Source: Bigelowiella natans CCMP2755 (lineage: Eukaryota > Protista > Cercozoa). From it: a stretch of 50,904 bases of DNA. The stretch is from assembly GCA_000320545.1 (NCBI GenBank), contig ADNK01002344.1, positions 1 through 50,904 on the forward strand, read 5' to 3'. The notes beneath the pieces are model-generated. The model worked only from the letters and a program-made list of their open reading frames with translations, had not been told where the DNA came from and made no database searches. This document shows positions 336 through 30,007 of this stretch, in pieces (position 1 is the first letter of the stretch; every line of letters starts with the position of its first letter). The position numbers and the translations under genes are program-made.

Positions 336-1012
336 CTGAGATCCTCCCGTATGATGCATTCGAGCGATGTCGCTGGACAATTATTCGAATCGGCCATTGG
401 CAATGTTGGCGTTGTTTTGACATTCCCTCCTACGAATATTAGGGGCATTGCGCGCCTGTCTGCGGAGATGAATATAGATGTCGAGGTGCTGTTGATTTCT
501 TCACGAGAGGCGCACAAAATAGAGGGAAGGGGGGGGCAAGAGAGAGAGGGGCGAATCAGAAGCACACGCGTCCCTACACTGGAAGAAGCATTGTCCAAAA
601 TACATAGATTGAGTAGAGAACAGCTTGGTATGGAATATCTTTGATCGGGGTAGGTATTTATGAAGACTAAATTTTATATCATTCCCTCCCCCCCCCCCCC
701 CTCCTCCTCCTCCTCTTCTATAGATCGGCGTTGCAATGCACAGTGGACAGGTAGCCTCTGCGCTGCTAGGGATGTCTCTGCAACCCCAGTATACGCTCTT
801 TGGCCCTGCTTTCCAGGATCTACGCGCCGTGTACATGCACGCCGCTGTCCCCGGCTGTATCGTCGCCACCGGTGCTGCTGTTCGAGCTGCGATTGAGGAG
901 GGAGAGGAGGATGAAGATGATGCGCGCCGAGCAGGCGCACCAAGCGGAGGGAGCAGGAGCGCGAGGAAAAGCAACAGAAGCGATAGCACACATCGTCATC
1001 GTCATCATTCTC

Positions 1013-1049
<37 letters not shown>

Positions 1050-3039: not shown

Positions 3040-3069
3040 CAGTCAGTCAGTCAGTCAGTCAGTCAGTCA
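3040..3069. repeat. (CAGT)n tetranucleotide microsatellite about 50 nt after the E3 stop codon
   Basis: cagtcagtcagt... about 7 units. Confidence 0.9.
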
Positions 3070-3119
3070 TCATCGCGTTGGCTGGCATCGTCCTCGCCGT
3101 CGATCTGCCGTGACTGTTA

Positions 3120-3465
3120 TTAGAAGGCTTCATTCCAGTAGCTTTCCCCGGTTTCCTCCTCTGTGTCGGGAATGATACTGGGAGCCTGAAAGGGATATGG
3201 CGGTAAATAACATGTCAGTCAAGGTGGAGGTTTAGTCTAATGTAATAATATCTTTATATATTATGACTTAAATGGGCTGTACAGACCGTCGACATAGTAT
3301 GCGAGTCATCGTCAATGGTCCCGCAGCTCTCCATGGCCCAGATCACTCGCCTAGTCATCGCTTGGACACTCGAATACCTAAGGTTGGAAAGAGGAGGATG
3401 GTGCCGATCCGTAAGTGATTTAACTTCTCGATCTCCCCCCCGCCACACAAATGGCGTAGTTGTAG

Positions 3466-3501
<36 letters not shown>

Positions 3502-6500
3502 CTGCAAGTGACGATAACACACCAACCTGGGCAGGTCTATCTGGAAGAAGCAAGTATGGGCGAGCGGGAAGAAAGAATCTGCTCATGCACATCATTAAGG
3601 GCGGTGTCAAATTACTACACGCCGGAAAAGAGACTATAGCTTGTGGGCGATGGTCCGCGGCTAAAAACGCGATGTTGCTCCAATTGCCCTCCCCTTCCTC
3701 CTCGATATAGAAGAGACGCTGGCCAGTGTGCTGTGAGTAGTGGGTAGTGAGTGGTAGCTACCTGGGTCGTCCGAGCTCTCGCTGGCATTATGCGAGGTGA
3801 TTTTGAATTTTTGTTCGTAGTCTTTCTCGGAATGTGGTAGCCGCGAGCTGCAATTATGTTATATATTATTAGCGAAGGGAGGCAAGAGAGGCTAAAGTCG
3901 AATGCCTCAAAATCAATCGCGCGCAAAACTATATGCCGGCGGCGGCGTTTTTCGCATACCGTCCCCATGTGAAGGAGATGAATTTGGCCCGCTGGTTGTC
4001 ATCGAAGACGTTCTCGAACATCTCCCAGAAGAAGCGTACGTGCTCATCCTGGAGCCCATTCAACATGCAGGAAACGAAGAGGGGGGGGGGGGGGGAAGAG
4101 GACGATATTATAATCGGGGCAATGCGTCCTACATGCATGCCGACATGTGCACGATGCATGAGTTGTATGTGTGTAAGTATAGAATCCTACATCTGGTGAG
4201 CATCCCGAGTAGGATGTCATTCGTTTAAGACTCGGTATGCGGGATTTCGTGACGCCTGAGAGCACACCACCAAAAAACACATCCAAGTAGTCAGTCTATC
4301 ATCGCATGGGGAAGAGTGATGATAATGATGATGATGATGATGATGATGATAGCGAGTACATAAGATGCAAGGGAAGAGGAGAAGGGGGGGCGGGGGAGCG
4401 AGAGGAACCTTGGCCACAGACGAGCATCTCAAGTTCTCTCCACGTAAAAAGCGAGAGAGTGGACAGAGCCACCACTTGCCCTACATTATTATTATAAGAT
4501 CAGTTAATATCAATAAATTGTGACACGACGACGATGATGATGATGATGATGATGATGATGGTGATGGTGGTGGTGGTGGTGGTGCTGGGAGTCAATTGAA
4601 GCGAAGCGGGCGCTGGCAGCAGCAGCAGTAGTTGCTTAATAAGAACTAAAATTCGTCGCTGCTGCTGCCACCGCACGACCCTCCCTCACTTCCCCAACGT
4701 CGTCGTCTGAGACAGATAAAACATGGTGAGTATTCATCATACCTAAGCCTCTTCTCATTGCTTTGGTGTGGAACTCGAATTCGTACAGCCGAGCGTTCCT
4801 GAGTGCTTCGATGTACCTCTTGCTGTTGGCCTTGGTGACGGGGCACCTGGCCCCATCCTCGATGAGGGGAACCACCTTGCCGTCGCACTGGCAGTAGCTG
4901 AACTTTATTCGAGCGAACTGTGAGTTGAAGTCGTTCTCGGACACCCCCTGCTGATGGAGCAGGGCCTGGATGGGCTCGATGGAGGTGAGGGCGGTTTGGT
5001 CGATCGCCTTGATGTCGTTCTCGGTCACCACGTCGCCCACCAGAGGTTTCCACACCACGCTGGGGAAGTTGAGCGGCAGCAGGAACTTGGTTCGGATCGC
5101 AAGGCCGAAGAAGCGTCCGAGGAACTCGTACAGGGCCTTGTGCAGGAGCGACTTCGACGAGGTGCGCGGGACGAACGAGTCCCTGTTTCTGCCGGCATCC
5201 ATGCGACCGTTGGGCGTCTTGATGAACAGTGGGAGCGCTGGAGATTCGAGTTCCCGGCACATCGTCTCGATGGCGTCTCTGTATGGGCCACCGGCATCGA
5301 TTGCGTTCATCCCGATGTAGTTCGCTTTGAACGCTCTGTGATTCTCACCGATCTTGAATACCCTCTCAATGCTGCGGTGCTTCAGCTGCTGGTAGAGCTG
5401 CCCGAAGATGGTACGGCGAGCCTTGTGGTCCGTCTGCCTCTTCAGGGTGACGTTGCTGGCGGCAATGACGTCCAGGTCGACGCTGTCGCCAACGTACTTC
5501 GAGCCGGACGCGAGCATGTACACTGTCTTGCCGAGAGTCTCAGCGAGCATGATTTGCTTGGGATAGGTGAAGATCAACGCCCTGACCTTCCTTATCGCGT
5601 CGGCGAGCGAGGAGAACCCCGACGGCAGGCTCAGATCCGTGAACATCAACGATTTGAGCACCATCTTAGAAAGCTCCTGGAGCACGTTTATCTGTAACTC
5701 AATGTGCTCGTCGCCATGGTGGTTAGAGGAGAGCTTGTCCCCAAGGAGATGCAGCTCGGGCACCCCAGGCGTGTTTTCGATCGGCGACATGTTCTTCTCG
5801 AGCGACCAGCGGTTGACGGCCTCCACGATGCTCTGCACGTGCTGTGGGCCACACATCGAGTCGAGGATGTGGAAGGCCTCCACGGAAATCTTCTTTATCT
5901 TGATATCGCTCCGCCGGACGAAGTCGTACTGGTGCTTCGGCAGGCCAGAGGGGGGGAACTCCATGTCGATAGGGATCACGATGAGCGGCAGCTCGATGGG
6001 CTCCAGACCGTTCACGAAGGAGCGCGTCAATTTGTTCTTCCGAATATCGAGCTTGTCCTGATGCGCTGAGGGGTAGCGGATCTGCCACCTCGTGCCGTCA
6101 TCGAAGTCGACGCTGGCAACGCCCCCCGTCCAGCTGCGCACCTTTCCAGCGTACCACGCCCACTTGTCGGGCGTGTTGTGGTCACCAAAGGGCGCCACCA
6201 CACGGATGCCGACGCGCGGAGTGATGGCTGCAGGAGGCTCCAGAAGGTACTTTCCAGATATCGGCGGATATGTGAACTTCTTCAGCTCTCTGCTCGACCG
6301 CGGGGAGCGGACAAACAGCTCCCATCGTCCAGCCTCGATGTCCACGCACTTGCACTGAACGCACTCGCTCTCCACGTAGCACGTGTTCTTTCTGTAACCG
6401 GTGGCTTTGACGAACACGCGGTCTCCAATCTGTACCGGGGGAACCAGCTCCAGGTTTGTCGGCATCTCTTTCTTCGGAACGCACAAATGCGTTTTGGCCC

Positions 6501-9500
6501 TCACCACCACCTGCGAGAGCGAGAGGGAGCCGAAGTCCTTACGTTGTATCCTGAGGTACCTGATCGTGCACCGCTGGCTGTCCCGTACCTTCTCATACAA
6601 TTTTTCGGCGGCTTCGTCCTTGATCTTGTACTTCTCCACAAACTCAGCGAATTGGGCGTCGGACATCTTGAGCACCTCGTCCATCGAGGACCCAGTGATG
6701 AGGAGAAGCCTCTTCAGCTCGTTGCTCCATGCGCATTTTCTGTCGTCATCATTATCATCATCACCATCATCATTGCGGCTTCCGGTTGTTCTGCCCAGCG
6801 CGTACTTGCTCTTCTCCTTGGACAGCTCTAAGGAGACATTGAGTATGTACGGGTCGGTCGGTTCCTGCCTGTCTTTTCGTTCTGCCATATCGACACAGAA
6901 CACAGACTGCTCGATAAGCTCCTCCATCGAAGGCTCCTTTGCATCGTCAACGGCCTGCAGGAAACCGAACACATAGCAGCTCTGGATGGAGAGGTTGGCC
7001 CCGGATGAGGAGGACGACGATGACGATGATGATGTTCTCGATGACGAGACAAAAGGGGTGTAGATCCTGACGCTCTCAACATCGATGGCTCGGCCGAGAT
7101 CCAACTCCCAGAACGCGTTCTCCTCCTCTTTGGTGCACGAAGCATAGAAAGGGTTGGCGTTAATATATCCGTCAACCGCCCTCCGTGCTGCAAAGAGCGG
7201 GCTGGCAGTGACGGATGCTCGTGTTGCGGCTGACAACGGGGAAGAAGAGCCCCGCTTTTGCTTGGCATCTTTTTGATCTTGGCGCCTATTCTTCTTCGAG
7301 TCTGCGGAGGGAGGCATGCTCTGCGACCCTCGGCTGTTGCCGTCGTCACGATACAGATGCATCCCCGCAGGCATTGGTCGTCGAGAGCTTTGGCGTGCGA
7401 CACGCCCATAGGACGCGTTGCTATCTGCGGTGATCTCACGTGATACGAAATTCTTGAGAACCCTCTTGGCGAAGAGACTAGGCTTGAGGGAGGAGCGCTG
7501 TTGCTTCAGACTTCCAGCACGAGACCTCGCACTTACCCCGCCCCCGAGTGAGTCACTGCTAACAACAGCAGCTGCACCGCCTATGCTGTCACTGCCGTCC
7601 ACGTTGACAGTGTCCAGAGTGTTTGCGAGGTTCAGGAGATCGGAGAACCACATGATGTTCCGGCCGCTGCTCCCGCCGACAGCAGCTGTGTCCGCGCCAC
7701 GGTAGAATGCGGGGAACGCCACGCGATCGTCATCCTCAGTGTCCTCTTCATCCTCCTCTTCCTCACCGCTGGTGTTGTCTCCAGATTCGAGGGCAGCAGC
7801 CTTGGCATCGGAGGAGTTAGTTCCGGGGGTAGTTGTCATCGTCCGCACCTTGAATCGCCGCCGCAGCCGCCCGAGCTTCTTCCTTCGATTCTGGCTGCGA
7901 TACAGCTCTAGGTTGAGCTGCAACAGGCTCTTAAAGAACGTGGAGAAATTGGGCTTTATCCTAGCGTGCAGCTGTATCATGTACTGAAACAGGAGTCTCT
8001 GGTACCTCTGCGTGATCATCGCGGGTTGCATGCGCCGCAGCGCAGGGTGCGAGTTGGCCGATATGATGTTGCAGGCGACCTGCAGGAGAGGTAGGTGATA
8101 CTTCGTAGGCCCTTTCACGATGCACGAGAGGATCAAGTTCATCACGGGCTTGCAGAAGACGTACGGGCGAAGGCTGAGGACTGGACTCTGAGGCTCCTTG
8201 TCCACTGCGTGTTGGAAGATGCCCAGGAAGATGTCCAGCAGCCAGAATACGATTCCGGGGCTAGGGGATGAGCCGGCTAGGATTGGTGATTCCCCCTTCT
8301 CTTTCGTGTCACCCGAGGCGGCCGCCGTCGTCGTCGCGGAAGTGCCATACTCGACCATAAGAAGCAGCTGGAAGACGAGCTCCCGCACCAGCATTGCGAC
8401 AAACGGCGCATGGCGCGCAAGGTAGGACAGCGAGTGCTGCTGCGAAGCCTGTGAACTGCTGCTACTGCTGCTGCTGCTGCTGCTGCTGCCTCCACCACCA
8501 CCACCACGATTGCTGGACTTGTCAGGAGATTGGATTTGCCCCGTGAACAAGGAGTCAAATTTCCCTGCGGCTTCTTCCTTGATCCTGGACACGACCCATG
8601 GCTTTAACCTGTCGATGGCCCCGTGCAAGCTCGACATCTCAAGAACCCTCAAGAGCTTCACTATCCACTCGCAGCCATAGCTACTGCCTGATGACGACGA
8701 GGAGTTGTTGTTGAGGAGAAAGTCGTACTGGGAGGTGTTCGAGCTGTACAGTAAGATTGAGATGACGCTCTCGCGTGCATACATCACACCAAGCGCGCGC
8801 TCAACGAGCGGGCGCATCCGGACGAGCTTCGCCCGTGCCAAACGAAATGCCTCAGATTTGGAGAACTTGTGCGACGGCACGGTGAGGAAGGACGTCACCT
8901 CATCTGGCGCTGGGGTGCAAGTTAGCGGCCCGTATACCTGCGAGTCCACGGTCAAAAGCTCTTGAAGGGCAGACCCTCCTGCCCCCTTTCCGTGTGATGA
9001 ACGTGATTGGATCTTGACGAGATTTTCGAGCTCCTCTGGGGTGATCAGCTCTTCCTCGCCCTGGTCTTCCTGATGGTGGTGATGGTGGTCATCGGTCACT
9101 TCGTCCTCGTCGCTGTTCCAACCCGACGACTTGTCTAACAGCTGTTCCTCCATCTCTGCCAACCGACTATACGCGCTTGGCCCAAGCCCAGCCGCCATGG
9201 GGGAGGGGCTAGTGCCGAGTGTAGACACACGGTAGGCAGGTGAATGAAAGAGGGGCGGCGAAATATCTCCCGGCTGCTGTCCCGAATGACGGCGAGGGCT
9301 ATCTGAGCAAACCTCCGACCTGATCTTAGACTTGACTTCGTTACTGTTATTCGTGGCTGGAGAGGATTCAAATTCTTGCCAGAATCTACGGGATACCCTT
9401 CGAGCATTGGCAGCCTTTACCTCGTTCCCTTGTCCAGAACGGTTCTTGGCGAGCTTGATCGGCGATCCGTACAGTCCAGTGGCGTAGTGAGACTTGATGT

Positions 9501-12500
9501 GAGTGCTTGCCAACTGATCAAGCTCTGAAAGAATCGGGAGACTGGAGGAAAGGCTGGGGAGGCGACCTGCTATCGGACGTCTCAGCTCACGTGAAGCGCC
9601 GCCGCCACTGCTGCTGATGAACGTCGGGAGCTTCGAAAATATGAGCAGTAGCATCCTGTCCCAGGTTTGGCCGAGCGGCATCTCCACGTCAATCTCGCTG
9701 AGTGCTTGTTTCCCCGCCATCACGCACAGGCTCTCCGGAAAGCCAAGCCAGGTGAGGTGCTTCGCCCGCTTCACCACTTGCCGGACTCTCTCCTCAACCT
9801 TGAGCTGGTGCCAGTTCAACAGGAGATCGTTCGCAGCCGCCCGGATTTTGAACCTGTTGCGAATCAGGACCTTGAGCGCGATGAGCCGCGAGCACCCATT
9901 TCCAATGCCGATCAGGCTTGACATGTATCGATCCACAGGGAAGTAGTTGAGCATGAGCTGCTTGGAGGGATCATCCTCGTGATCTGAATCATTGATGAGA
10001 AGCGAAGCCCGCACGTAGACACCGTGTTCTGGTTCTGCCACCGCATGCGGGGCGCTCAGTAACTTGAAGCCACCGGTAGCTTGGGCCACTGGATCGACGA
10101 CACCAGAATCCCTCGGAGCCGTAATGTAGAATTCGCGCCCAAGCTGGAGCGAGATCATCTGGGTCTTAAGAAGCCTGTGCGCTGGCAGCGTCCAAGAATC
10201 CTTGTTAATACTGACGGTTATACCTGCCTCCTGGCTCACTCGAACACCGAACCTGAACCACCGTTTCTGAGGGAAGAGCAGGGGTGATTGGTGGCCTAAG
10301 ATCTTCATTCTGCCGCTAGGAAGCAGCTCCACAATGCCGTACTCTCCTGAATCGGAATATCTTAGGACCCGAACCTCATGCTTGCTATCTGTGAGGTCCT
10401 TTAGGTGCGTGCATGATGCAAGCTCGGCAAGTGGAACCGATAGGATCGCCTCGTCTAGGCTGCTCGACTTCCTCCCGTGGCTCCCCTCTTCCTCAAACCG
10501 CTTTTGCTTTTGCTCCGCGTGTGCGGTGGACACCACCTTGAACAGATTTAGCGTCTTCATCTCTCCCGAGAAGCACCTCGAGTTGAGGTCGGTGCCGATG
10601 AAGCCGTTTCGGCGGGGGATCCGGAGCGTGAAGTCCTTCTTGAATCGCATTCCCGCCTTGTCCAGGAGCTGCTCGGTTATGGTGGGGGGGGATTCCTTGC
10701 ACACATGCACCTTGACATCTACCACCTTGTTCGACCGCGAGAGCTTTGATCCTCGCCATTCGAAGGGGTAGCCGAAGGGACGGTCCTCCATTCCTTCTGA
10801 GAACGCTAGAAGGGCCCGCTGTGTGGAGGTTTCCCGGCAGTAGACCCCGCCCCCATCTACACCCCCGGTCGTGGCCTGAACGGACGACGACTTCTTATTC
10901 TTCTGTTGTTGCTGCTGCAGCGGCACAAAAGAACTCTGTTGTTGCTGCTGCAGAGGCTGCAGTGGTGGCGAGGGCTGCTGCATCGTGAACTCCAACAGGA
11001 GGTTGGACAGTGGGTCGGGGCACCGGATCGGCTTCTTGAACTCAAACCGCACCCACTGGTCGCTCTTCGTGGGCATCTTCTTCTCGTTGTTGGGGAGCAG
11101 GATGTCCTTCTCGGACACCGACATGTCAAAGTCCCCGTCCGTATACTTGACCTGATACGTTCCGTCGCGGTTTATCCCTGTGATCACGGCCGAGTAGGTG
11201 CGGCCGCCGTGCCACTTCGCCTTCACTTTTTCCTCCTTCTGGAAGAGGTTCCCGGAGAAGAGGCCGATGGGAAGATTTTCGGGCCCGTAGACTACGTTCG
11301 TCTCAACGTATCTTTTGTCGCTGTTCGCAAACTCAGATTTCTCCGTCCAAGCGTAAGCGATCCGAACGTTGTGCAAGTCTCTCTTGGGAGCGTTGTATGC
11401 TTTGATAGAGATGCCGGAGATCAGGGTCCCATTCTCAATGCCCACGTTTGCGAGCTCTGAGCTCAGATATATGCTCTGATATTCCAAGTTCATGAACGCG
11501 GTGTTCAGGGGGTAGCCGTGTGCCTTCACCCCGACCGACTTAAAGTGCTCACACAGCTGGATATCGGCCGAGAGGTGGCCGCACGATTGATCGAAGTTGG
11601 CCTTGAAAATCGGAGAGGAGATTTGTGAGATGCTGGAGCTTCCAACAGGGCCGCTCCCTCTGTTCTCAAGGGCCTTCGAGGCCCCCTCGAGGATGATGAA
11701 TGGACTGTGCAGACGATTGCTCTCGAACGTTGCGATCAAGGTGTAGGTGAGCTTTTCGTCCTTCCCGATCACGTCGACATCGAGGCTTTGCTGATGTGGC
11801 GACGGATAATGCATGCGGTACTTTGAGACAACGCCGGCGCGCTCGATGATCACGGTCGCCACGCCATTTTCCCACTTCTCGACGGATCCTGGGAACCAGC
11901 CCCACCTATTCGGGCTTTTCTCTTCCAAGAAGGGTACCATTACCTTAGCGTCCTCCTCTGGGAACAGCGGTCCATCCTTCTCAGGCAGGATGTACTCCCC
12001 AGTCTGTAGAGGGTATTCCACCAGGCGTCTCTGGGCATTCTCCCCACCTGGCGGGGCGATAATCTGCAGGAAAAACCGTCCATCTTTCCTCCTGGGGTAG
12101 CACATTTCAACACGGCCCTCGACGTAGAATTTGCTGGACGACGTAGTCTGCGCAACGCCGGACGAGTCGAGGTCCATGCAGTCTCCGGAATTGGCACCAG
12201 CTTCGTCGTGCCTCACCATGACGCGCTCTCCCACACCTATTGGACATTCCTGCATGAGCAGAATCATGGGCGATTGGGATGTGTTGGCGTCGAGCATCTT
12301 GACGAACTCCAAGTTCATGGGAGACAATGATTTGGAGGCATCGTCAGTGATGGCGCCGCCTCCGCCGCCGCCGCCGCTACCACCTTCACCGCTACCACCA
12401 CCACCGCCCCTATCAGTTCCTCTCGGAGAGAACTCTGTCATGGTGTTTTCCTCCGTTGCCTTGGGAGATGCATTGCTCGGAGTGGGAGAGAAGTTCGCCG

Positions 12501-18500: not shown

Positions 18501-21500
18501 ATCGAGTCCAGGGGTTGCATGGCGTACTGGACGAGGTTTTGGATGTACTGCCGGTTCTCGTTCTCGAATTTCTCTCTCCACAGCCCTCCCGAGGATTGCA
18601 GGATCTGTGCGAGCACGCGCATGCACATGCGATGTAGCTGGAGGTTCGATCTTCTCTCTGGCCAACGGGCTATGGAGCCTGGGGTTGTCGGCATCAACAG
18701 GCTATTTTCATCTTCCCCGAATCCGCCTCCTATTACACCATCGTCCTCCAAACTGCCCGTAGTGATGGCACGCACACCCCCCTGGGACTTGAAAGCGGTG
18801 GAGTTGCCGTAAGTGAAATTGGCTAGCTTTGCAATCAAGTCCTTGACGTGGCTCAAGTGGTGGTACGGGAACACGACATCCTCCAAAAGGTGCAGGGCGG
18901 TGTCGTTCTCAACGGTGACGACGGACCCCGAGTCCAGCAGCAGCGCCGTTCTCTTCGACTTTGGGAGGGTTCCCGAGGACGCAGAAGCGAGGAACTTGAA
19001 GCCCCAACTATTTGAGTTTACGTTGCTAGTTTTGAAGTAGACGACGAAGCTGTCGCTCGGAATAAGAAGGGGCGATTCCTTACCGACCCCGGGCCACTTG
19101 CGCCCTGAGTAACCGTGAGGGTTGCCGAAAACCTGACGCTTGCGTCTATCTTTGTAGAAGTACAGAGTGTCCGACTTGGTCTGGCTGCGGGTGTCGAAGA
19201 CCACCTTGATCTCCTTCGCCCCCGGCATTCTCACATCAAACCACTGGGACGTGGAGCGATCGTGGGGATGCTGCGACTGTATCGTGATGTCCTGAATCTG
19301 CTCCTCGGACACGACCGAGTTCTCCGGGCGGAGTATGTGCTGCGAGAGCCGAATGACGATTCCCGGATCGCTCTCCGAGCGCAACCGCACTAAGCTCCCC
19401 ATCCGGAGTGCCTCCTTCTCCCCCCCGAGGATTGCGAGCGCAGACACCAGGTTGTTCGTGAGCTTTTCGTCGTAGCCGATGGTCCGCTTCTTGGTGCTCG
19501 TCAGATCGTTGAGGGCCCCCAGTAGGAACCTCTCCGCCTCCCTTCGCCACAGATTAGTTCGCTCCGCGGGCGAGTGGCGGGTGATGAGCGAGCGGTAGAG
19601 GTAGATGGTTTCCCACGCTAGCGTGGCGTTGTTCGTGAATAGCTCCGAAGGCGCCAGAGAGAGGAGGTGTGAGTGTGGGTTGCGAGGGCTACACCCGTGA
19701 AGATCCGATCGAACATCGACTGTAGCAACTGTTGCGAGCTGTAGAGAAGGCTGGTGCCATTCGGCTGCGTGTACGGCAGCGCCTTTCTGAGGACGCGAGT
19801 AACGAGGATTGACACCGATGAATTCGGCGCGAACCCCTCCATCACGATAGGGAGGAGGATATTCAACCACCGTGGGGAAGCAATAGCAGTGGCCATTTTC
19901 TCAGACTTGACAGCACGGACTAGTACCCACAACTGTTGGCACAACTGAAGCTCTAACTCAGCCGCAGTTAACTCGTTTTTATGCAGTTCCTCGCCACTGT
20001 CTTTGTCGCTCGATGAGCTTCCAACCTTGATGAAGTTCGTGTTAGCAGAATTACCAGCGGCAGTCGAGGGACTCCCACCAGCGGAAAGGGAATCTTGTCG
20101 TTGTCCTCTTTGCTGATCATTTCCCTCAGAAGCAAAACTGGAGATGCTGCCGGAATCTGTGAGATATCGCGCATGCTTGGCAACGCGGATACGATCGGAG
20201 CTTATGGAAACCCATTCTTTGACCCCAGAATGGAGAAATCTGACATTGATGTCGCTGGGAAGCTTGGAGATGAGTATGGCCTCCTTCCAGTCGCCATGGT
20301 CATTCAGCACCTCAATCATCATGCCGGTCTTCAGAGAGACGCGCCATTTCCTATCATTTATGTGCTTGTACCAAGATATCGAGCAGTCCGAGAGAGCCAT
20401 ATCGGACCAGAGAGGATAGTCGTCGCCTCCTGCAGCATTGGGCTCGATATCGTCATCGTCCAAAAGCTCGTGGTCGTCAGGGGGCCCGGATCCTTTAGCT
20501 CGGACGGATTTGCCTAGAACGCCCGTCTTTTCAAGCACGGTTTCCTTCAGCGCGATGACCACGGTGTCGTCGGGATTGAACCTGCGGATCATTGCATCGC
20601 ACCATCTTCTCTTAGGCCTGCTGTAGTAAACAACCTGCTGGCCAACGTGGAACTTTGCGGTCGGGACCCCGCCCTCTTCAGGGCCCACTCCACGAGGATG
20701 CTTGTTTCTGGGAGGGTGTGAGCCTTTGGCGAATTTCTTGCGGTCGAGAGGCTGCTGGGTCTTTTCATCATGGTTTCTGCTTCTGCTGCTGCTGACGCTA
20801 CCTAATTTCTCGTCCACGGCTACGTGCTTCTTGGCCCTAAGGAGGTGGGCTCGACGGGCTGCAACGACACGTGTGAACCAGTCAAATTCCGTCTCCAGCA
20901 TATTGCACACGTTCTTTAGCTCAAGCAGGGTGTCCCTGTCGTCCATCTCAAGCAGATCGTCGACTTCATAGCCTTTGTCCTCGAAGGTAAATGCGAATCT
21001 ATCGAGCCCGATCAACGAGCACAGCTCTTTTACGCTCTTCGGCTTTGGAGCCTCCAGAACGCGGTTCAGTGCCCGATTCTCGTCAATTACCTTCTTGCGT
21101 GCTCGCGTCAAACTCTCAACACGCGAGTGTATCACATCCAGGATAGTCTTGCAAAGAACCGGGTATTCGCTTGCATTGTCAAAGGCCATGTATGATACCA
21201 GGCGAAATAGTAGCCACGCGGCGATCTGTACATATATTTCTTGTTCTCCAGCCGGGTAAAGGATTCCAGACCCAAGTCCCTCGCCCTTGCCGTCGCTAGT
21301 AGCAGCATCATCCTTATCATCATCCGTATCGTCTGTATTTGAGGTGCGAACCTTCTTCTCCTTCTCCTTCTTCTCCTTTCTCTTTGGCCGGGGCACTGGC
21401 TCTAGCGCTTTCGTCTTTTTCGAGGACTGCGCGGAGCCGCGCATGGAGGCCAGCTTCGAGAGCCTCGACACAAAGCCTATGCTCTGTATGTGGCCCAGGT

Positions 21501-24500
21501 CACAGGGTTCAAGGATGGAACACAGCTCGATTGTGCACCTCTTCATGACTACGGAGGAGCCCTTACTTGTGCGGTCCAGGTTGAACATGAAGCTGATGAT
21601 TCCGAAGTAGGAGTCGCCGAGGGCGCGAGTGAGTTTCGGCCCAGCGCATTCCACAGACGTGAGATAGTGGTGCGGGAAGGTCCTGTTGCGAACCAGGGCG
21701 TCTGGACTGCTGCCGCTGTTGCTGCGGCTGTTGCGGGCGCTCTCCCTCGCCGCTAACGAGGACGATAGAGAAGATGCCGAGTTGGCCAATTTTGACGAGG
21801 AGTTTCCAGAGGAGAGGCAAAAGACCCTGGCAAGATGGTAAAGGGCCTGGTTCATAAGAACCACGGCGGTTGATTCGCTCTGAACCACCCTACTCGACTC
21901 GTCAACATCGAGCATGCCGTACTCTCCGGGCGCGTCCCTGCGTTTTCCCTCTGGCCAGGCCATATCCTTGGGAATCACAATCAAGGGCGTATCGACTAGA
22001 TCGATCTTCTGGATGAAATCAAGGTCTAGCCCCCCCCCATCCGGAGCCAGTCTGCCCCTGTGGGGGCTCGGATACCTGATCTCCCAACTTGTCCCATCGC
22101 CGACATTGACTTTGGCCTGATTTCTCCTCCACTCGCTGACGCTTCCAGCGTACCAGGCCCATTTGTCCGGTGTTTTCTCGTCTTGGATCGGGATGAACAC
22201 CCGCGATCCGACCTTGGGCTCCAGCGTATGACGAGGGCACACCAAGTACTCGTCGTTGCTGGGTGGGTAGGGGAAGGCCTTCTCCTTCTGGTCGGATAGG
22301 GGTGCCCTCACTCGCAACTCCCAACCAGTTCTCCCGACCGGCACGCAAGACGACACAGCCCCCTCCAAGTAGCACACGTGGTTTTGGAACCCCTTCGTGC
22401 GCACGAGCACCCGCTCCCCCCGCGAGAGCGGCGGGTGAATCTTCTCCGATACAAACGGTTCTGGTGAGCGCGTAGGTGCCGATATCTGTGGAAACTGAAC
22501 AAAGCACGTCAGCAGCGACTGAAAATAGCGCAAGCCTTGCAACCTCAGCAGGGCGCGCGATCTCTGTATCAGCATCACTTGCCGCACAGATTTCGAGCCG
22601 AATCTCTCCGGGACCGCGGACAGGATGGACAGAATATCCTCACACACGTTCTCAGCGGAAGAGCAAGCTTGGTCGGCCACGGAAACTGTGAGCAGCTGCC
22701 TTCTTACAATTTCTTTTTTTGCCCAGGCCAAAGCTGATTGGTGGAATGACTTCTTGTGGTCGGCCTTGCGCCACTTCGAGGATCCAGATCTAGCGAGCCG
22801 CATCGGAGAGAGCAGGTCATCGTCATCATCAAACTCCTCGTCGAGCATTCCTGGAGAGACACCCATCTCTTTTCTCTCGCTATTGTTAAAGAACGGAATG
22901 GCCCGTACAGCAGGGGGCGGTTGCAGCTCTAACAACAGCCGAAGCCTCTCCCTATATTGCTCGCACAAGTTGTCCATGTTCGCACCCTCGCCTTTTGCGC
23001 GCCCCAGCTCCATCTTTATTCTCCTCACTCGAGACCACCACTCGACGAGGATTTTGAGCACTAGCTTACACTTGCCTTCAAGAGGCTTTTTTTCCTGCTT
23101 TCCCTGCTCTCTATCCATCCGTTCTAGAGTCCTTGCTACGTAGAGCGCGGGCTCAATCATGCGCGTGTGCCGCAGAATGGCGGCGAAGGCAAGTCGGCAT
23201 ATCGGCTCGGAAACCCTCTTTACGGACCCGGGAAGGATAACAGGTCTGAAGTTGCGACGAATCTCTTTCAGTAATATCATCCCAAGGCTCTTCTCCTCAC
23301 AAATGAGCTGAAGAAAATTGTTTGCTTCGTGGTCAATGGCGTCGTCGTCGTCGAATGATGTGGTGGACGTGCCGGAGCCCTTCCTCTCCCTGACTTCTGG
23401 CTGCTGCTTGAGCTCGCCCTCTTTTCTTGCGTAAGAGGGCCGAGAGCCAAGGAGGCTCTCATCCAGAATGGACTGGAGTTCTGGAATGACACCGCTTCTA
23501 ATGCCCCCCTTCAGGAGCGTGCAGTGTATCCAGCTAGTAGTGGCTGGTGACCCTTCGATACTCGTCAGCGGCAGCGAGAAGGTGAGGTGGCCGCACATCA
23601 TAGACGCTACTCTTGCAGTGATGACGGCAAACCGAGAGTGCAGCCAACGAACCACGTCGACTAGAGGGTGGTTGGAGTCCTTTACCTGCGTCACAACCTT
23701 TTCGACGAAGCTCCGGTGCTGCTCGAGGAGGCTTTTCAGGCGCGGAATCATCCGCAGGCAGAACTTGGGCCTCGAAGACAGTCGCGAGCACACCGTCCAG
23801 ATCGCTACCATTATTTCCCTGGCCGTCGAGCCAAGAATGGAGCTTTGGATGCAGCAAAGCAGCCAGCGCGCCTGCGTGGGGTTTTCCTTGGCGGATTCGA
23901 CCATAGTAGAGAGCTGCTCGTACAGCCGCTCACAGTCTCGGATAGCGCTCTCAGCGATGTCAGCGAAAATACTGCAGTACATCTTGGCGTTGCGAGAGGC
24001 CTGCGATGGGTGCACGTTCCCCAGCATTACCCTGCGGAATGGATTTCCGCTTGAGGAGGATGAGCCGCTTCTATCTCCCCACCCGCCGCTATTCCGACTG
24101 TTCCCGTTAGACGAATCGCCTTCGCTTTGTAGCAAGTTGAACTGCCGCATCCATTCTTCTGCATTGACTAGTAACCATTCACCCGCCCGCTCGATGTCAT
24201 CGTCCGCCCCTTCCATGGCAGCCTCGCACACGGCACGTGTATAACCGAGGTCCATCAACCTTCTAAGATCCCCAGTAGGCGCTTCTTCTCCCGAACTCAT
24301 CTGGCTTTCCAAAGCCGCCGCATTCTGTGAGAGGTACTCGGCGGCAGCTTCTACGCTACCGTCGCTCCTCTGCAGGGCTTCAGCACACGCCTCTTCGCTG
24401 TACCCCAGGTCCACAAGCGTCTGTACCTGATGATAATGACAATAACGATGATAGCATAATTAAGCACGAGGTGATGAGCTTACGACCTCAATATCATAGC

Positions 24501-27017
24501 TGAGGATGAGTTCAACAAAAAGGAAGTTCTCAATGCATGGTTCACATACACACAACAAACTCAAAGAATGGATTGGTTTGTGCCCCTCCCTACACTCGAA
24601 TATCATTCCTCGAATTAGTTAGTTGGCAGAAACCAGTTCTGAGAGCCCCGAGTTGGAGGAAGATCGGGGTGAAGCAGCCCCAGCCCCCACAGGAGCAAGC
24701 ACAAGAGAGGGCGTTCCTTTTGAGTCCTCAGACGCCGACGACGCCGACTTCGCAACTTCAGCCTGCTTGAGCATCGCGGCCTCGGAGTCCAACCAGAATC
24801 GCGTTCGAGCAATCAGCTGCCTCAAAAGGCTGTTCGCCATAGCCAGGTGCCCCGTGCGGAACTTGGATTGAGTCCCTTTCCCTCGGAATTCGAGAGAATA
24901 TCTTGCGTCTAGCAGCGCCCTGTAGCCGTGTGGAGTATGTCTGAGCAGGTGCGATGCGAATATAAGCTTGCCGCTCCCGGGATTGTTGCTCTGCGCGGAG
25001 AAGGTAACGGCGGGCGTCAATCCGGTCCCTATCCGAAACCCTTTGAAGGCTATTCCTGGGGTCTTCCCGTTAAGATAAAAGCTCATCTCGCGCTTATCTA
25101 GGTCCAGCGCACAGCCGACGATATCGCCGACGTTCCACCGGCCAGTTTTGTAGGGGATCTTGCCGTTGTGAAAGCAAACTTGGCGGATTCCGTCGTAGGC
25201 CCAGGACACCTTATCGTCCCCCGTGCCGTCGTTGTATCCCGGCGGCTTGAATTCGTCCTTGATCGCCCAGCCGATCTGGCCGATGTATTTGGAGGTCAGC
25301 TTCACTTCGTAGTACCACTTCCCCCTCTTGAGCCTCGGCCCCTCAGCAATGCACGTTGGGAAGTTCGACACGGCTCTCACCCTCCGGTCGTTGATCGCAA
25401 TCGCACCCTCTCGCGACGCGACCTTCAAGCACTGAACGGTGTAAGGCTCCTGTTCCGAGCTCCAAACTTTGGCCTCAAGCTGCGCCTGTGCGCGATGGAG
25501 GTCAGTGTTGCGCAGGTGCAACCAGAGATTGGGTATGACGATAATGGGGAGCTCGTTGAACTCGTAGCTCTCGATCTTCTTGTCGCTGATCGCGTCGTTG
25601 ATATTGGGGCTCGGGTACTTGAACTCCCCATCCTCGTTGTCATCAAACTTGACAGCAGCAAGGCCGGCGTTTCTATTCTGCGGCGAGCGGGTCCACCGGG
25701 TGACCTTCCCTCCGTACCAAGCCCACCTGCCCTCCACTCTGGGATCCCCATATGAAACGTAAACACGAGCGCCGGTCGACGGCGTTATCGCATTTCTAGG
25801 GGGCAGCAGGTACTCTTTCCGGGCGGGTGGGTACGTGAACGTCCGTATTGCTTCCGAGTTCCGAGGAGCCTTGACTTTGAGAATCCATTTCTTCTCTCCG
25901 ACGCCTGCCTCAAAAGGCGAGGATGACGACGACGACGACGACGACGACGGTTGGGAATACTCATCATCTGCCAACTTCACGTCGAGCACGATCCCGTCCA
26001 GGTAGCACTCGGCATGGCCCCGCGTGCGAACAAATATCCGCTCTCCGACTTGCACGGGGGCCATCTGTGCCAGGGAATTCAGCAGTCGCTTTCTCTCCTT
26101 CATTTCCTTTTCTTTACGCTCTCGTATCCGGCGGTGCCTCTGGCCTTCCTTCTCCCATTCCTTGTCCATGGTGATCTGCTTCATGTCAGTCTCCAGAGCT
26201 TCTTGGGAGAGGACCTTCAAGAACTTCTGGAAGTTTCTGAGGAGCCCATCTTCCGTCTCGAGTTCGTTGTACGTTCTGACTACGGTGAGAAACTTCCTGA
26301 ATTTGTTCATCATCACACCGTACACGTTCTTTTCGATTGGATTCAGCGCCTTCGATTCCTTCTCCTTGACCTTGATGATGAAGCGGATTTGGGATGCAAT
26401 GTCGGGGTAAAATATGTGCACGCCGTGGCTCAGGGTGCTGCTAGCTACTCTAGCGAGGCTTGCCCTGATGGAAGATAGGCCATTTCTGGCTTTATCAACT
26501 AATAGATGCCATACTAATTTTTGGAGATGACTCAGCATCACTCCCTCGGTGATTCGAGGACTGCTGCAGTCGCCGCCTTCCTTCTCCTCTCCCTCTTCCT
26601 CCCCGCCCACACAAAGTTCTTTTCGTTTCTTCAGTATTCGGAGAACCGTTTTTAGATCCTTCCGGTCTAAGGCAGTGATGATCTCACTATCTGTTCTTGT
26701 CGGTGATGGGAACGTCCTTTCGAGGGCTTTCAAGTCCGGATTCAGCCTGATCACGTCGTGCACATAGCCCATCGTAAGAGCTTGCTGATTCGTCTTTGGC
26801 GACGTAGGTGACTTCAGCGGCGAGGAATGAGCTCGCGGCTTCGGGGTAGGGAGGCGTGGCGTCTTGGGTGACAGAGGAGATGGAGGGGAGAACAGTGAAA
26901 GTGGGGCTTCGGAAGTTGCCAACTCGATTATAGTTACAAGCTGATGGCGCATTCTGATTTGAAGGAAGTTAATGCACACAAAAACACAACAAATTATATA
27001 TGTAAAAATATAATCAT

Positions 27018-27070
<53 letters not shown>

Positions 27071-29264
27071 ACATTTATATTTTAGTGTCCACGAAGATCT
27101 TATTCTCGAACACAGGGAAAATGATGTACGCAGGAGAAAAGGAAAGAAAGGATAACCGGGCTTGTGTTAGTGGTGGTACCGTTCAATAAGATCTCGGGGT
27201 GAAGTGAAAGCATTTGTGTTCTCTTCATCACGTGTCGCTTGATAAAAGTGGTTTCGCATGATAACCAACCTGAGATTTATCATGCAATTCAAGTGATGAT
27301 TATGGGCTACGTCTAGATATATGAAACGATTCAAAATATGCAAACAAAGCGACGGCAGAGATGGGCAGACAAAAGAAAGAGAGACTGACATTGAGTGTAC
27401 GATGATCGCGTAGGAGAAAATATCGGCCACTTCATCGTAGGTTTCCAAGGGCGCTTCCCTCGTTTTGGATTCCCGCATCGCCCTCGTCTGCCTTTGCGTG
27501 GCTTGCTCCACCGTGCGTTCTAGTTTTTGCAGGGCCTTCCTCAGAATCGAGGAGGCGTGCCGAAACAGCTCCGGCTTGAGCTCGAGCTGCAGCGGGGATT
27601 CCAACACGAGCTTGGTGGAGACGTGTGTGGCCTTGAAAACCTGCATCCTGAGCGTGTCGGTCGGCTTTCTGGCAGTGAATGCAAGGTACACGGTCTCGGA
27701 GTTTATCACCAACGGCCCGTTCCCGGCGACCCCAGGCCACTTGCTCGAGCCTATGTATCGTTCCTGCCCCCAGTACTCCGAGTGATCCGCGTCTCGAAAT
27801 ATCTTCACGAAGGCACCGCTGCTCAACGCTGTACAGCAATCATCGAAGACCAGGGCAATCCCCTTGGCGTCGCTTATTCTAATGGTGATGCTCGCGTCGG
27901 ACGACATTTCTCCTGCTCTTTCTAGTACTTGGGCCGGCTCGGCCTCAAAATCGAAGATGAAGGCTTGCTCTCCTCGAGGGCAATTCGCACTTCCGATATG
28001 GCCGAGAGACTTTCTGGCGCGACTGCTTGGCGACGCCTCATCATTATTCCTATTTTCATTTGAGTCGGGACTGTTATCCTCTTCTTTAATATCCAACTTG
28101 TCCTCTTCCTCCTCCTCCTCCTCCTCCTCCTCGCTCTTGTAGCTATCGCCATCTTTTGTGTGATTTTCTTGGTCATCGTCGTCGTCGTCGCCGCCGTCAT
28201 GGCTACGATCGCTGGTGCCCCGGAACTCTGGCGTAGCCGTAGCTGGACCATACTCCTGGCAGAGAATAGCAAGCAGACTCGATACCCGCGCACAGAAATG
28301 AGTAGTGGGAATCGTCGAAGCTGTTTCTTCTTCGACATGTCCTCGATGACGTTTGCTTTCACCGAGTCTATGCTCCTGATCAGAAGTCGCCACGTCCTTC
28401 TGATCTGCGCTACGAGCACTATCATCATGCATTTTTGTAGGATCCAAGAACTTTTGTAGCTCCAAAAAGTTCAACCCGAAGATCTCTGTCTCGGATACGG
28501 GGGGTTTTCTGAGAAAAATTATACGTGAACTCAATTGGAGCAGGAGGACGTGCATTTTCTGAAAGTAAAAGAATACTTTGACAGCGAGTTTTCCATGAAA
28601 AATTTCTCAAGCTTATGCACAGGGTCGACAGAGAGCATCTTGACATTGCTCGAGACGATGAGATCTGCAGTATGAATACAACTTTGTTATTGCAAATCAT
28701 TCCAACTGCGGGGCTGGTTTTTGGTTGAACTTTTTTGCTAGTGGACTACTCACCTAGAACATCCAGTACTTTGCTCAGTGACCCATCAGCTATCGCAATA
28801 CTCATTGATATCTCTATCGAAGGAGCACATACCTAAGTGATTTTCAGGGAAGATATTTTGTCAGAGGGGAGGGAGGACGGGCTCGAACATTTGTCTTTCA
28901 AAATTATTGCCGTACTTCTTGTGGGATGCCTTCTTGTGTTGCAAGAGTTTTTAGTCTTGAAACCAGAGCCTTAATACTCGGGTCTATATCTGGGAACGGA
29001 TTTTTCCCCGCCATCGGCTTCAAGGTTAATGCCGGCATTGATCTAAAAAATGAGAAATTCACATTTCGCAATCCACGATCTTTCTACTAATATCTTCGTA
29101 CCTAAGGCTCTGGGAGAGGTTAGAAAGGACTCGGGCTAGCATCGCATACTCTTTATGCTTCAGCACAACGTTAAGCATCTCGACTGACATCCCAATTAAA
29201 GCCTGTCATAGACAAATTCACAATTTAGGAAAACACGGATTTCATTGTCCTCTATCACACATAT

Positions 29265-29347
<83 letters not shown>

Positions 29348-30007
29348 GAGTAGTACCTGCAGCGTGTCATCTAGAGGTTTCGGTAAGGGTTTCAATTTAG
29401 AGACACTATGTACCAACTGCTTGTGCTTGTGAACCTGACAAGACCAAATGCGGATTAACCATGATGTACCAGCCTCATAATATACGATTGCGTACCTGAT
29501 TTATCTTTCTCTGACTCTCTCTGACAACCGAATCATATATGTAATCTATAATGGCCATGCGTTGATCCAAGTTATCATCGCGAAGTTCCGGCCTCAGGGA
29601 GCTGAGCTGACGGTTGATAACCTCTTTCACCTGGTAGGTAGACGAAGCACACTAAGTTGCTGCACCTAGTATGTCTAATAATTTCACAAACCTCATCCTC
29701 AAGAGCTTGATTTGTCTGGTTCGTGAAGATTCCCACCGCTGGTTCCGATTCGACCTGCAAAATGCATTATTTCGCAGCAATTACACACAAGAAGTTGGCT
29801 GATGGCCCTCGTTCCACCCCTTTAGTGTTGTCTAAGCACTGTTGCTCTCACTTTAAGGGAATCTTGCTGCTCCTGCTTTGGTAAAGGGATCTGTAGATTG
29901 CGATATAGATCTTTAACGCGATCTTGGAACACAGAATGGAGGTCGAGACGAATTAGCTCCCGGTCCATCTCTTCCGTGTTGGAGAGGCTTTCCAACGAAA
30001 ATTCCAT
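3120..30007 (-). CDS. Giant multidomain HECT-type E3 ubiquitin ligase (HERC/HECTD4-like HECT domain), about 8,100 aa
   Basis: Phase-consistent GT-AG exons: 30007-29852, 29754-29692, 29630-29496, 29434-29357, 29202-29102, 29042-28916, 28832-28754, 28664-28577, 28508-27390, 27269-27180, 26953-24634, 24426-19693, 19642-12799, 12629-4743, 4480-4409, 4255-4191, 4048-3960, 3847-3762, 3578-3527, 3377-3287, 3185-3120 (sum 24,342 nt = 8,114 codons). The junction at 19643-19692 is uncertain. C-terminal HECT motifs: AIDAGGPYRD, LPLFIKTPNG, LYEFLGRFFGLAIR, SLFTWRELEMLVCG, VRFFWEM, FTWGRSRLP, FPLAHTCFFQIDLPRYSS. Confidence 0.9.
3290..5480 (-). other. HECT catalytic domain of the giant E3; catalytic Cys in AHTCFF (exon 3578-3527)
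   Basis: Canonical HECT motifs spread over the end of the large exon and six small exons; the HTCF motif is intact. Confidence 0.93.
6500..7200 (-). other. F-type lectin / F5/8 type C (discoidin)-like domain with insertions, within the giant E3
   Basis: ARRAVDGYIN..SCTKEEENAFWELDLGRAIDVESVRIY ... IRYLRIQR..SLSLSQVVV. Confidence 0.7.
14560..14955 (-). other. Jacalin-like beta-prism lectin domain within the giant E3
   Basis: VISIRAY..LEGVAF..QYGSKKGSPSRFVLDKNEYINCVTG..LAKQLTFHTSNGR..F.FKAREGFEVVGL matches jacalin F.L..GEYI..V.G..L.F.TS.GR. Confidence 0.75.
17640..18300 (-). other. LamG/concanavalin-A-like domain with an inserted Tudor-like domain
   Basis: GNFSLSAII..GAIIAQ..GLYIQNNVLHFG [LGDKVMAKYKGGSQYPATVVRLNEDGKITVNWEDGD] VNDGKIHHVGVTH..VALYVDGNLE..VKVGKG..FKGNIQNPRLFTGVLTDTEMRAL. 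Confidence 0.8.
18985..19285 (-). other. CUB-like beta domain, copy 2, within the giant E3
   Basis: QSQHPH..VRMPGAKEIKVVFD..SQT..DTLYFYKD..YSGRKWPGVGKESPLLIPSDSFVVYFKT..NSWGFKFLA matches the ES.HPY/PGA/WGF pattern. Confidence 0.7.
20185..20660 (-). other. Two Tudor/Agenet-like domains within the giant E3
   Basis: FHVGQQVVYYSRPKRRWCDAMIRRFNPDDTVVI and WRVSLKTGMMIEVLNDHGDWKEAILI..INVRFLHSGVKEWVSISSDRI. Confidence 0.6.
24150..24426 (-). other. Two tandem UBA domains within the giant E3
   Basis: VQTLVDLGYSEEACAEALQRSDGSVEAAAEYL and RRLMDLGYTRAVCEAAMEGADDDIERAGEWLL match the MGF/LGY..AL..A.E(Y/W)L pattern. Confidence 0.85.
24930..25420 (-). other. SPRY/B30.2 domain within the giant E3
   Basis: RGKWYYEVKL..GQIGWA..GTGDDKVSWAYDG..WNVGDIVGCALDLDKREMSFYLNGK..GIAF..LTPAVTF. 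Confidence 0.9.
27021..27070. repeat. Compound (AT)n(GT)n intronic microsatellite
   Basis: Read directly from the sequence. Confidence 0.9.
27670..27920 (-). other. CUB-like beta domain, copy 1 (ZZEF1/MYCBP2-type), within the giant E3
   Basis: IRISDAKGIALVFD..FVKIFRD..YWGQERYIG..KWPGVAGNGPLVINSETVYLAF; clearly homologous to copy 2. Confidence 0.6.
29266..29343. repeat. Compound (AC)n(AT)n intronic microsatellite
   Basis: Read directly from the sequence. Confidence 0.9.

Follow-up and report, generated by a model that had tools for sequence, protein, structure and literature searches.

A single reading frame runs along the minus strand of a 50,904-nucleotide (nt) stretch of DNA from the protist Bigelowiella natans CCMP2755 (contig ADNK01002344.1, positions 1 to 50,904; here called the window), from an ATG at 30007 to a TAA at 3120. 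Very probably, 30007-3120 is one nuclear gene that encodes a giant HECT ubiquitin ligase of class I, related to HECTD3 and the large HERCs. Our best model has 21 exons and a coding sequence of 24,342 nt, specifying a protein of 8,113 amino acids. This product belongs to a known class of ligases and is no new type of enzyme, but it is unusually large for that class and carries a new set of accessory modules. We report here that it joins a HECT domain to tandem Tudor/Agenet modules.

Evidence for a single gene

An earlier note on this DNA, made without database searches, had proposed that five large minus-strand open reading frames (ORFs) and the short exons flanking them join in phase into one gene of about 8,100 amino acids. 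The five ORFs are present where the note had placed them, between 28.6 and 4.6 kb, and encode 462, 786, 1598, 2485 and 2697 amino acids (479, 820, 1613, 2495 and 2697 codons from stop to stop). By simple arithmetic, random sequence would stay open for 2,697 codons with a probability of about (61/64)^2697 (approximately e^-129), so an open frame of this length is not due to chance. The G+C content is about 0.55-0.57 in the coding parts and lower, about 0.43-0.49, in the flanks. All 20 introns have GT-AG ends, phase is kept, and the joins are free of stops. The same is true of the four junctions that the note had singled out, at which the introns (minus strand) are 27179-26954 (226 nt), 24633-24427 (207 nt), 19692-19643 (50 nt) and 12798-12630 (169 nt). 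The G+C content of the introns is 0.30-0.52 in 19 of the 20, the exception being 19692-19643.

The gene has orthologues that match it in length and in the order of their domains. P0001, a predicted orthologue of 7,801 amino acids (50% identity) on a 91.6-kb ENA contig, was identified by searching proteins exhaustively with the 1,200 codons at the end of exon 13; a second member of its cluster, P0151, has 7,803 amino acids. P0001 is collinear with the window over its full length, with its Met at 30007 and its last residue at 3123, and no junction is left uncrossed. L002, an 18,994-nt contig that is the longest of JGI sample 3300016974, is 47-65% identical. It ends in poly(A) and is therefore the mRNA of a relative. 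L002 is collinear over 25095-3287, spanning the junctions 24633/24427, 19692/19643 and 12798/12630, and it also crosses every intron of the HECT domain except the last, 3286-3186. This contig carries two overlapping ORFs with one frameshift (L002:7621-7664) in the middle of the orthologue, which is probably an assembly error.

The 3' part of the gene is also covered by a transcript from B. natans itself. L001, a 3.2-kb transcript contig with 99-100% identity, extends over 7047-2767 and lacks precisely the seven 3' introns. The two ends that the note had assigned to the gene, 30007 and 3120, agree with the start and end of P0001 and with the splicing of the B. natans transcript contig into the last exon. 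Collinearity with P0001, the two transcript contigs and the in-phase, stop-free exons all favor the proposed gene of about 8,100 amino acids with a single intact HECT domain at its C-terminus.

Domains that recur in the protein, or that are interrupted by introns, provide further links. A tandem Tudor module of 155 amino acids is confined to this gene in a search of the 91-Mb genome, and therefore four of the five long ORFs are tied together. The third copy of this module is cut by the 12798-12630 intron, with model positions 4-104 at 13087-12785 and positions 99-136 at 12633-12520; the sequence across the junction reads '...GWGWFPG | TIRTWENGVAVVDFDDG...'. The first UBA domain begins across the 24633-24427 intron, because its profile match starts at position 6.

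Public models of the locus are fragments. They consist of naive ORF calls and a 155-amino-acid model, jgi/Bigna1/141138 (aug1.60_g15846), that shares a 90% cluster with the transcript-derived C-terminus and confirms B. natans as the source of the DNA. The prediction that automated calling would split the gene was thus correct: the calls include one of 2,329 amino acids for 19402-12416 in addition to the JGI model of the C-terminus. We considered P0171 (2,329 amino acids, 100% identity) as an annotated gene model and rejected it, since it is the unspliced ORF call of 19402-12416. P0077 was rejected as well, being likewise an unspliced ORF call, from a second record with 98.8% identity.

Exons and introns

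The 5' exons 1-8 were traced with P0001 as a guide, and the seven 3' exons were traced to the TAA at 3122-3120. Phases, split codons and stops in each exon were checked by script, and searches used single exons or stored orthologue proteins as queries. All exons, introns and domains described here are on the minus strand. Exon 1 (29852-30007) starts with the ATG at 30007-30005, 18 nt downstream of an in-frame TAG. It matches residues 1-53 of P0001 from the Met of that protein and ends at a GT donor. Exons 2-8 are each bounded by AG and GT. Exon 2 (29692-29754, 63 nt, phase 0, no stop) matches residues 51-78 of P0001, exon 3 (29496-29630, 135 nt, phase 0) residues 73-131, exon 4 (29357-29434, 78 nt) residues 130-143 with 71% identity, exon 5 (29102-29202, 101 nt) residues 145-178, and exon 6 (28916-29042, 127 nt, with a split codon for R) residues 178-221 with 52% identity. 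Exon 7 (28754-28832, 79 nt) encodes 'IAIADGSLSKVLDVL', and residues 221-246 of P0001 are 'VAIARGSLVDVL'. Exon 8 (28577-28664, 88 nt, with a split codon for D) encodes 'DLIVSSNVKMLSVDPVHKL', similar to 'DHAMSSKVNEISPQPVLKL' in P0001.

Exon 9 is divided by an intron that the earlier note, although right about the other junctions and the ends, had missed within the 462-amino-acid ORF. Exon 9a (27390-28508) follows an AG acceptor at 28510-28509, and its end is defined by a hidden intron of 120 nt (27270-27389; GT-AG, G+C 0.39); exon 9b (27180-27269) ends at the GT donor at 27179. If the hidden intron is left in place, the coding sequence is 24,462 nt (8,153 amino acids), and its removal gives the 8,113 amino acids of our model. 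It encodes 40 residues that are found only in the window and are absent from P0001. Before excision the protein reads 'AIIVHSM...LVIMRNHFY' in this region. A 19-residue translation made across 27390|27269 gives 'AIIVHSMLVIMRNHFY', which matches 'AIAHAMLRIMRNHFY' of P0001. The intron sits in the sole low-G+C run inside any large exon (27199-27406), and because no other such run is present, further hidden in-frame introns are unlikely. Since 27270-27389 is in frame and free of stops, it is invisible to ORF analysis, and similar hidden introns could be present elsewhere in long protist ORFs.

Most of the protein is encoded by four large exons, each bounded by AG and GT. Exon 10 (24634-26953, 2320 nt) is in phase, and conservation with P0001 continues across 27180|26953. 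Exon 11 (19693-24426, 4734 nt) aligns with residues 1410-2961 of P0001 and 128-1566 of L002 ORF A; both matches start with the first base of the exon and end at most two codons past its last base. A 50-nt intron (19643-19692, GT-AG, G+C 0.64) then restores the frame. It contains CACAC and CTCTCT runs. Exon 12 (12799-19642, 6844 nt) is collinear with P0001 (2966-5249), L002 ORF A (1574-2521) and P0172 (34-1187). Exon 13 (4743-12629, 7887 nt) ends in the N-lobe of the HECT domain, and L001 is unbroken over 7047-4742.

The remaining exons are short. Exons 14 (4409-4480), 15 (4191-4255), 16 (3960-4048), 17 (3762-3847), 18 (3527-3578) and 19 (3287-3377) are spliced in L001 and in phase. Exon 18 carries the catalytic-Cys motif 'LAHTCFF', and the canonical C-lobe of the HECT domain ends in exon 19. 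We rejected a stop at 3257-3255, after exon 19, as the end of the gene, because the transcript and the orthologues show another intron and a last exon that reaches 3120. This exon 20 (3120-3185) encodes the acidic tail '...EEETGESYWNEAF' and the TAA, with the same ending in L001 and P0002. L001 extends to 2767, indicating a 3' untranslated region at 2767-3119.

Alternative readings of the locus

Several points weigh against a single ligase gene of this form. B. natans transcript support is limited to 7047-2767, within exons 13-20, and exons 1-9 are linked to the rest by phase, by conservation across the junctions and by P0001 and P0151, which are gene predictions themselves. One hidden in-frame intron was found in a large exon, and as several window-only insertions remain in the large exons, others are conceivable. 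The 50-nt intron 19692-19643 is the least certain junction: it is the shortest of the 20 introns and is G+C-rich (0.64), and the orthologues are 7-8 residues longer here than the spliced product. The class I placement is drawn from similarity ranking and architecture, and we infer the ligase activity and all ligand assignments. Searches for transcripts gave nothing further. An exon-only 30-nt pattern from the end of exon 11 matched no transcript contig among the metagenome contigs, nor did a related-locus search with the first 300 amino acids of exon 12 yield one. Protein searches with the last 700 amino acids of exon 11 and with P0001:340-1130 gave no junction transcript, but both were swamped by low-complexity candidates, and the collections searched may omit records of this genome.

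The region could instead be split between an upstream gene for a protein of about 680 amino acids with a CUB-like domain (30007-27167) and a separate HECT gene of about 7,430 amino acids that begins at the ATG at 26952. Such an arrangement is conceivable because this ATG, the first Met of its open frame, directly follows the proposed acceptor. In addition, the upstream frame stops at a TAA (27169-27167) three codons past the donor, the junction is not crossed by transcripts (L002 starts downstream, in the SPRY region), and residues 640-781 of P0001 do not align with the window here. However, conservation with P0001 crosses 27180|26953, where 'DLIE-R-MRHQL' is aligned with 'NLVQ-K-IRGQL' and the Met is opposite an internal Ile. 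Both parts are contained in one product in P0001 and in P0151 (7,801 and 7,803 amino acids), the upstream CUB-like domain has a paralogue in exon 12, and the 226-nt gap has GT-AG ends and an intron-like G+C content of 0.31. Two genes are thus unlikely.

A second alternative dispenses with the 50-nt intron and takes the frame change near 19.65 kb as genuine, caused either by a frameshift in a gene that is decaying or by the border between two genes; it seems to us even less probable. The short length and the G+C content of the proposed intron, by far the highest of any in the gene, would fit a disruption, as would the additional residues of the orthologues and the ORF call P0077, in which the frame ends identically in a second record. 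Yet the relative's polyadenylated mRNA contig and P0001 both read through, with strong conservation on both sides, and therefore coding continues past 19.65 kb, whatever the exact splice. About 5,000 downstream codons are open and conserved, and the first 166 codons of the downstream frame contain no ATG. The 50 nt have GT-AG ends and a C/T-rich tract before the AG, and other introns of the gene are only 59-68 nt long. An assembly chimera or a non-functional relic is hardly credible. Nothing specific speaks for either beyond the extreme length of the frame and the fragmentary public models, whereas independent orthologues from two or more other organisms align in order along the full length with 35-65% identity, B. 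natans transcribes and splices the 4.3 kb at the 3' end, and 8,113 codons contain no stop. The single-gene reading is well supported.

The HECT domain and its class

The HECT domain (3287-5265, exons 13-19) is complete at the C-terminus of the protein, with the N-lobe in exon 13 and the C-lobe in exons 14-19. Pfam HECT matches exon 13 over positions 2-166 of 306 (3.3e-23). The catalytic Cys codon, TGC at 3552-3550, lies in 'LAHTCFF' and is aligned with the active-site Cys of HECTD3. P0153, a transcript-derived full HECT domain, aligns to residues 497-859 of HECTD3 (3.4e-44). When solved structures are ranked by similarity, HECTD3 leads by 60 bits, scoring 154 bits compared with at most 94 for SMURF2, HUWE1, RSP5, TOM1 and E6AP, and the HECT matches include a HERC1-labelled protein. 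Past the canonical end of the domain, a separate last exon adds the acidic tail '...GESYWNEAF'. This tail is conserved: P0001 ends in '...ESYWDEEY' and P0172 in '...ESYWDEGF', giving the pattern '...ESYW(N/D)E.(F/Y)'.

The architecture had been thought to match no recognised family. We find instead that it fits a known class. The class I HECTs are HERC1, HERC2, KIAA0614, HECTD3, HECTEx1, HECTAm1 and HECTHe1; SPRY is confined to class I, and Laminin-G3 to HECTHe1 and HECTEx1, which are marked by its presence together with SPRY (Grau-Bove et al. 2013, PMC3673628). The window protein has SPRY, the class I trait, and it has the HECTHe1/HECTEx1-type pair of Laminin_G3 and SPRY. Its HECT domain is nearest to that of HECTD3. 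The gene fits the known class because SPRY, Laminin_G3 and HECT together are the class I pattern, which recurs in relatives of 4,100-4,200 amino acids. For example, A0A485KLZ6 of the oomycete Aphanomyces stellatus (4,236 amino acids) and a protein of Papus ankaliazontas (4,102 amino acids, KEGG label HERC1) have SPRY and Laminin_G_3 upstream of a C-terminal HECT domain. They also share its HECT similarity group and a very long, mostly unannotated scaffold. In contrast to these relatives, the window protein is about twice as long and has, in addition, five copies of the tandem Tudor/Agenet module, a pair of UBA domains, two CUB-like domains and an F-type-lectin-like domain. The distance between SPRY and HECT is about 6,500 residues in the window protein and about 500 in the relatives, and the window protein is without their MIB_HERC2 domain.

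The comparison with individual class I enzymes shows both likeness and difference. Human HECTD3 (PDB 9r85) is the best solved match of the HECT domain, with the catalytic Cys aligned, and both proteins have a galactose-binding-like beta-sandwich upstream of HECT. In HECTD3 this sandwich is presumably an APC10/DOC domain. Unlike HECTD3, the window protein has a sandwich (7335-6754) that matches F-type lectins and not ANAPC10. The HECTD3 chain in 9r85 has 864 residues; the window protein has the extra conserved acidic tail exon. The large HERCs (HERC1 and HERC2) likewise combine a class I HECT domain with giant size, and HERC1 also has SPRY, but the window protein has no RCC1-like or WD40 repeats at E<=1.

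The size of the protein, which had been regarded as far beyond that of known giant HECT ligases, is not exceptional. HECT proteins of more than 10,000 amino acids are recorded in Apicomplexa: the largest protein of Plasmodium falciparum (PF3D7_0628100, >10,000 amino acids) and that of Toxoplasma gondii (17,226 amino acids) both contain HECT (PMC10993292). Our search matches include HECT proteins of 5,333-6,685 amino acids. The apicomplexan giants are likewise HECT proteins far above human sizes in protists of the stramenopile, alveolate and rhizarian (SAR) group. The P. falciparum giant is reported to have ankyrin repeats, and its likeness to the window protein is, by description, HECT and size.

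Tandem Tudor/Agenet modules

The scaffold contains five copies of a module that the earlier note had described as an unrecognised repeat. An AlphaFold2 model, Foldseek and atlas matches identify its fold as tandem Tudor/Agenet. The copies are at 25519-26088 (alignment A1; genome search E 5.5e-55), 21967-22431 (A1; E 3.8e-67), 12532-13081 (split by the 12798-12630 intron), 11689-12255 (A1; E 3.3e-52) and 5968-6456. The model of the fifth copy has two five-strand SH3-like barrels in tandem, with a predicted local distance difference test (pLDDT) score of 91.7. Its Foldseek matches are SETDB1, AGDP1, SGF29, BAHCC1, FMRP and UHRF1 (probability 1.0, template modelling (TM) scores of 0.36-0.46), and its atlas matches are BAHCC1-like Tudor, SETDB1 and Agenet clusters (TM 0.45-0.53). 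The five-fold module aligns well within and between species, with the signature 'WAWYxG ... YPSPH ... P.IVIP' and conserved W, W and Y residues. It shares the double-barrel fold with these known readers, but identity to them is just 10-20%, and the conserved signature is its own.

Other Tudor-like matches in the window are weak. A single Tudor-like stretch at 11134-11232 gives a Pfam Tudor_2 match below the cut-off (E 0.001), and the same weak match is seen in P0001. A Tudor_3 match at 18088-17957 was not counted as a domain because it overlaps the LamG match. In the literature searched, we found no paper that joins HECT with tandem Tudor/Agenet, and the pairing is absent from the survey of Grau-Bove et al. 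2013.

Proteins that consist largely of such modules are also present among our matches. P0005, P0157, P0007 and P0014 (660-880 amino acids) are each built from three to five consecutive tandem-Tudor modules of this type, and P0005 is from a Chlorarachnion reptans transcriptome. Either other chlorarachniophyte proteins make use of the module, or these four are pieces of longer proteins.

Other domains of the scaffold

Several further domains are found by Pfam above the cut-offs. A SPRY domain (24991-25320) matches PF00622 with E 2e-21 and 76.7 bits (cut-off 26.3) and is also present in P0001. Two UBA domains (24157-24426) match Pfam UBA in two stretches (1.7e-15), the first starting in the last codons of exon 10. 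A concanavalin-like Laminin_G_3 domain (17663-18040) matches PF13385 with 3.3e-10 and 40.7 bits (cut-off 27.6), and in P0001 this family matches two stretches (4.4e-18, 66.3 bits). P0001 has SPRY, two UBA, Laminin_G_3 and HECT in the same order, with SAM_2 and PDZ_6 at threshold. About 85% of the window protein is without a family assignment.

The list of domains in the earlier note mostly stands. It is right on SPRY, the UBA domains, Laminin_G_3 and HECT, and two further entries, the CUB-like and F-type-lectin-like domains, are indicated by other means. Two CUB-like domains are suggested by structural modeling. The second (18959-19288) has an AlphaFold2 model with pLDDT 78 and Foldseek matches to CUB domains with TM 0.57-0.67; the top matches are the CUB domains of Kremen, MASP-1, TSG-6, C1s and neuropilin, with marginal E values of 1e-3 to 6e-2. 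The first (27608-27970) is a paralogue of the second, whose model supplies the evidence for the fold. At the sequence level there was no match, with Pfam CUB giving E 0.094 in one of five members. A profile of the CUB-like domain had a sole match in the PDB, a de novo TIM barrel, which we rejected as spurious.

An F-type-lectin-like (galactose-binding-like) domain at 6754-7335 is indicated by an orthologue profile. This profile, A4, matches FBP32 (7e-12, both domains of that protein), Sm-hPAF (7e-10) and eel agglutinin 1K12 (1e-5). The alignment covers the N-terminal half alone, the single-sequence score is 1.3e-3, and the Pfam F5_F8_type_C_2 match in this region is weak; Pfam ANAPC10 has no match in the window or in P0001. 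F-type lectins bind fucose through a His in the motif H-x24-R-x-R. The position opposite the His in 'SCTHT' of FBP32 is K in the window, G in P0001 and G in P0172, and fucose binding is doubtful because of these residues in the three species.

The other proposed domains are weaker. A jacalin-like region (14723-14917) is borderline, with 22.9 bits for Pfam Jacalin (cut-off 22). The block is conserved in three species, and an orthologue profile of the region gave no PDB chain at E<=1. A SAM-like remnant (16067-16174) aligns with the SAM_2 region of P0001 just in its C-terminal half. P0001 scores at the cut-off for SAM_2 (22.7 bits, cut-off 20.5), and Pfam SAM had no match in the searches with window exons. 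A PDZ-like region (15221-15421) is weak in the window, where it aligns with a PDZ_6 domain of P0001 (33 bits, cut-off 27); the B. natans region has a loop deletion and no Pfam match.

Two statements about HERC-like features were also examined. RCC1 repeats had been noted as not evident, and indeed no RCC1 family was matched at E<=1 in any window segment or at E<=0.1 in P0001. WD40 repeats were not found at E<=1 in the window segments. In contrast, the proposed resemblance of the N-terminus to a HERC1/2 motif was not upheld: the N-terminal 340 amino acids of P0001 match no PDB chain and none of 170 other proteins, namely the HECT matches and the members of their clusters.

Possible function

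HECT ligases receive ubiquitin from a loaded E2 that docks on the N-lobe; a thioester is formed on the Cys of the C-lobe, and ubiquitin is then passed to a substrate lysine. In the giant ligase of B. natans, a ubiquitin-loaded E2 would dock on the HECT N-lobe, ubiquitin would form a thioester on the C-lobe Cys encoded at 3552-3550, and it would then be transferred to a substrate lysine, the substrate being held by the N-terminal scaffold of about 7,700 residues. We postulate that this scaffold is a platform with numerous sites of weak binding. Ubiquitin would be bound by the UBA pair, and proteins or glycans by the SPRY and beta-sandwich domains; methylated residues might be the ligands of the five tandem Tudor modules. 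One or two LamG domains, two CUB-like domains, the F-type-lectin-like domain and possibly a jacalin-like sandwich could also contribute to recognition. Based on this analysis, the most likely role of the protein would be that of a multivalent platform that recruits substrates.

The Tudor modules raise a more specific, if rather doubtful, possibility. In other proteins, the tandem Tudor/Agenet fold reads methyl-lysine or methyl-arginine. The ligase might be a reader-writer, in which the Tudor modules bind methyl-Lys or methyl-Arg on histones, RNA-granule proteins or other proteins and thereby direct ubiquitylation by the HECT domain, with the lectin-like sandwiches providing a second, glycan or protein, address. 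If methyl marks are indeed what the modules read, methylation would be linked to HECT ubiquitylation through this protein. Otherwise, apart from its size, the protein would be an ordinary enzyme of a known class.

Whatever the substrates, the gene documents that a HECT ligase of some 8,100 residues is present in an organism other than the Apicomplexa and is conserved in at least three organisms. It also corrects a locus for which the public record holds only the 155-amino-acid JGI model and naive ORF calls. B. natans has been reported to have many HECTs with little domain diversity (PMC3673628). We suspect that this low diversity may partly reflect truncated models, because accessory domains are not seen in fragments that contain only the HECT end.

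Other observations

The B. natans genome contains 41 HECT matches at about 25-30 loci (G000), e.g., C2038:87376-88629, C3665:30649-31800 and C2538:63715-64629. Several of these loci are in open frames of 2,700-4,400 amino acids, which suggests that there are more very large HECT genes in this organism.

Four neighboring ORFs in the window, at 736-1896 (+), 35132-35905 (+), 38056-38703 (+) and 43925-44851 (-), encode 170-386 amino acids and match no Pfam family at E<=0.001. Within the gene itself, microsatellites of the form (TA)n(TG)n or (CA)n(TA)n lie in two introns, at 29203-29356 and 27020-27080.

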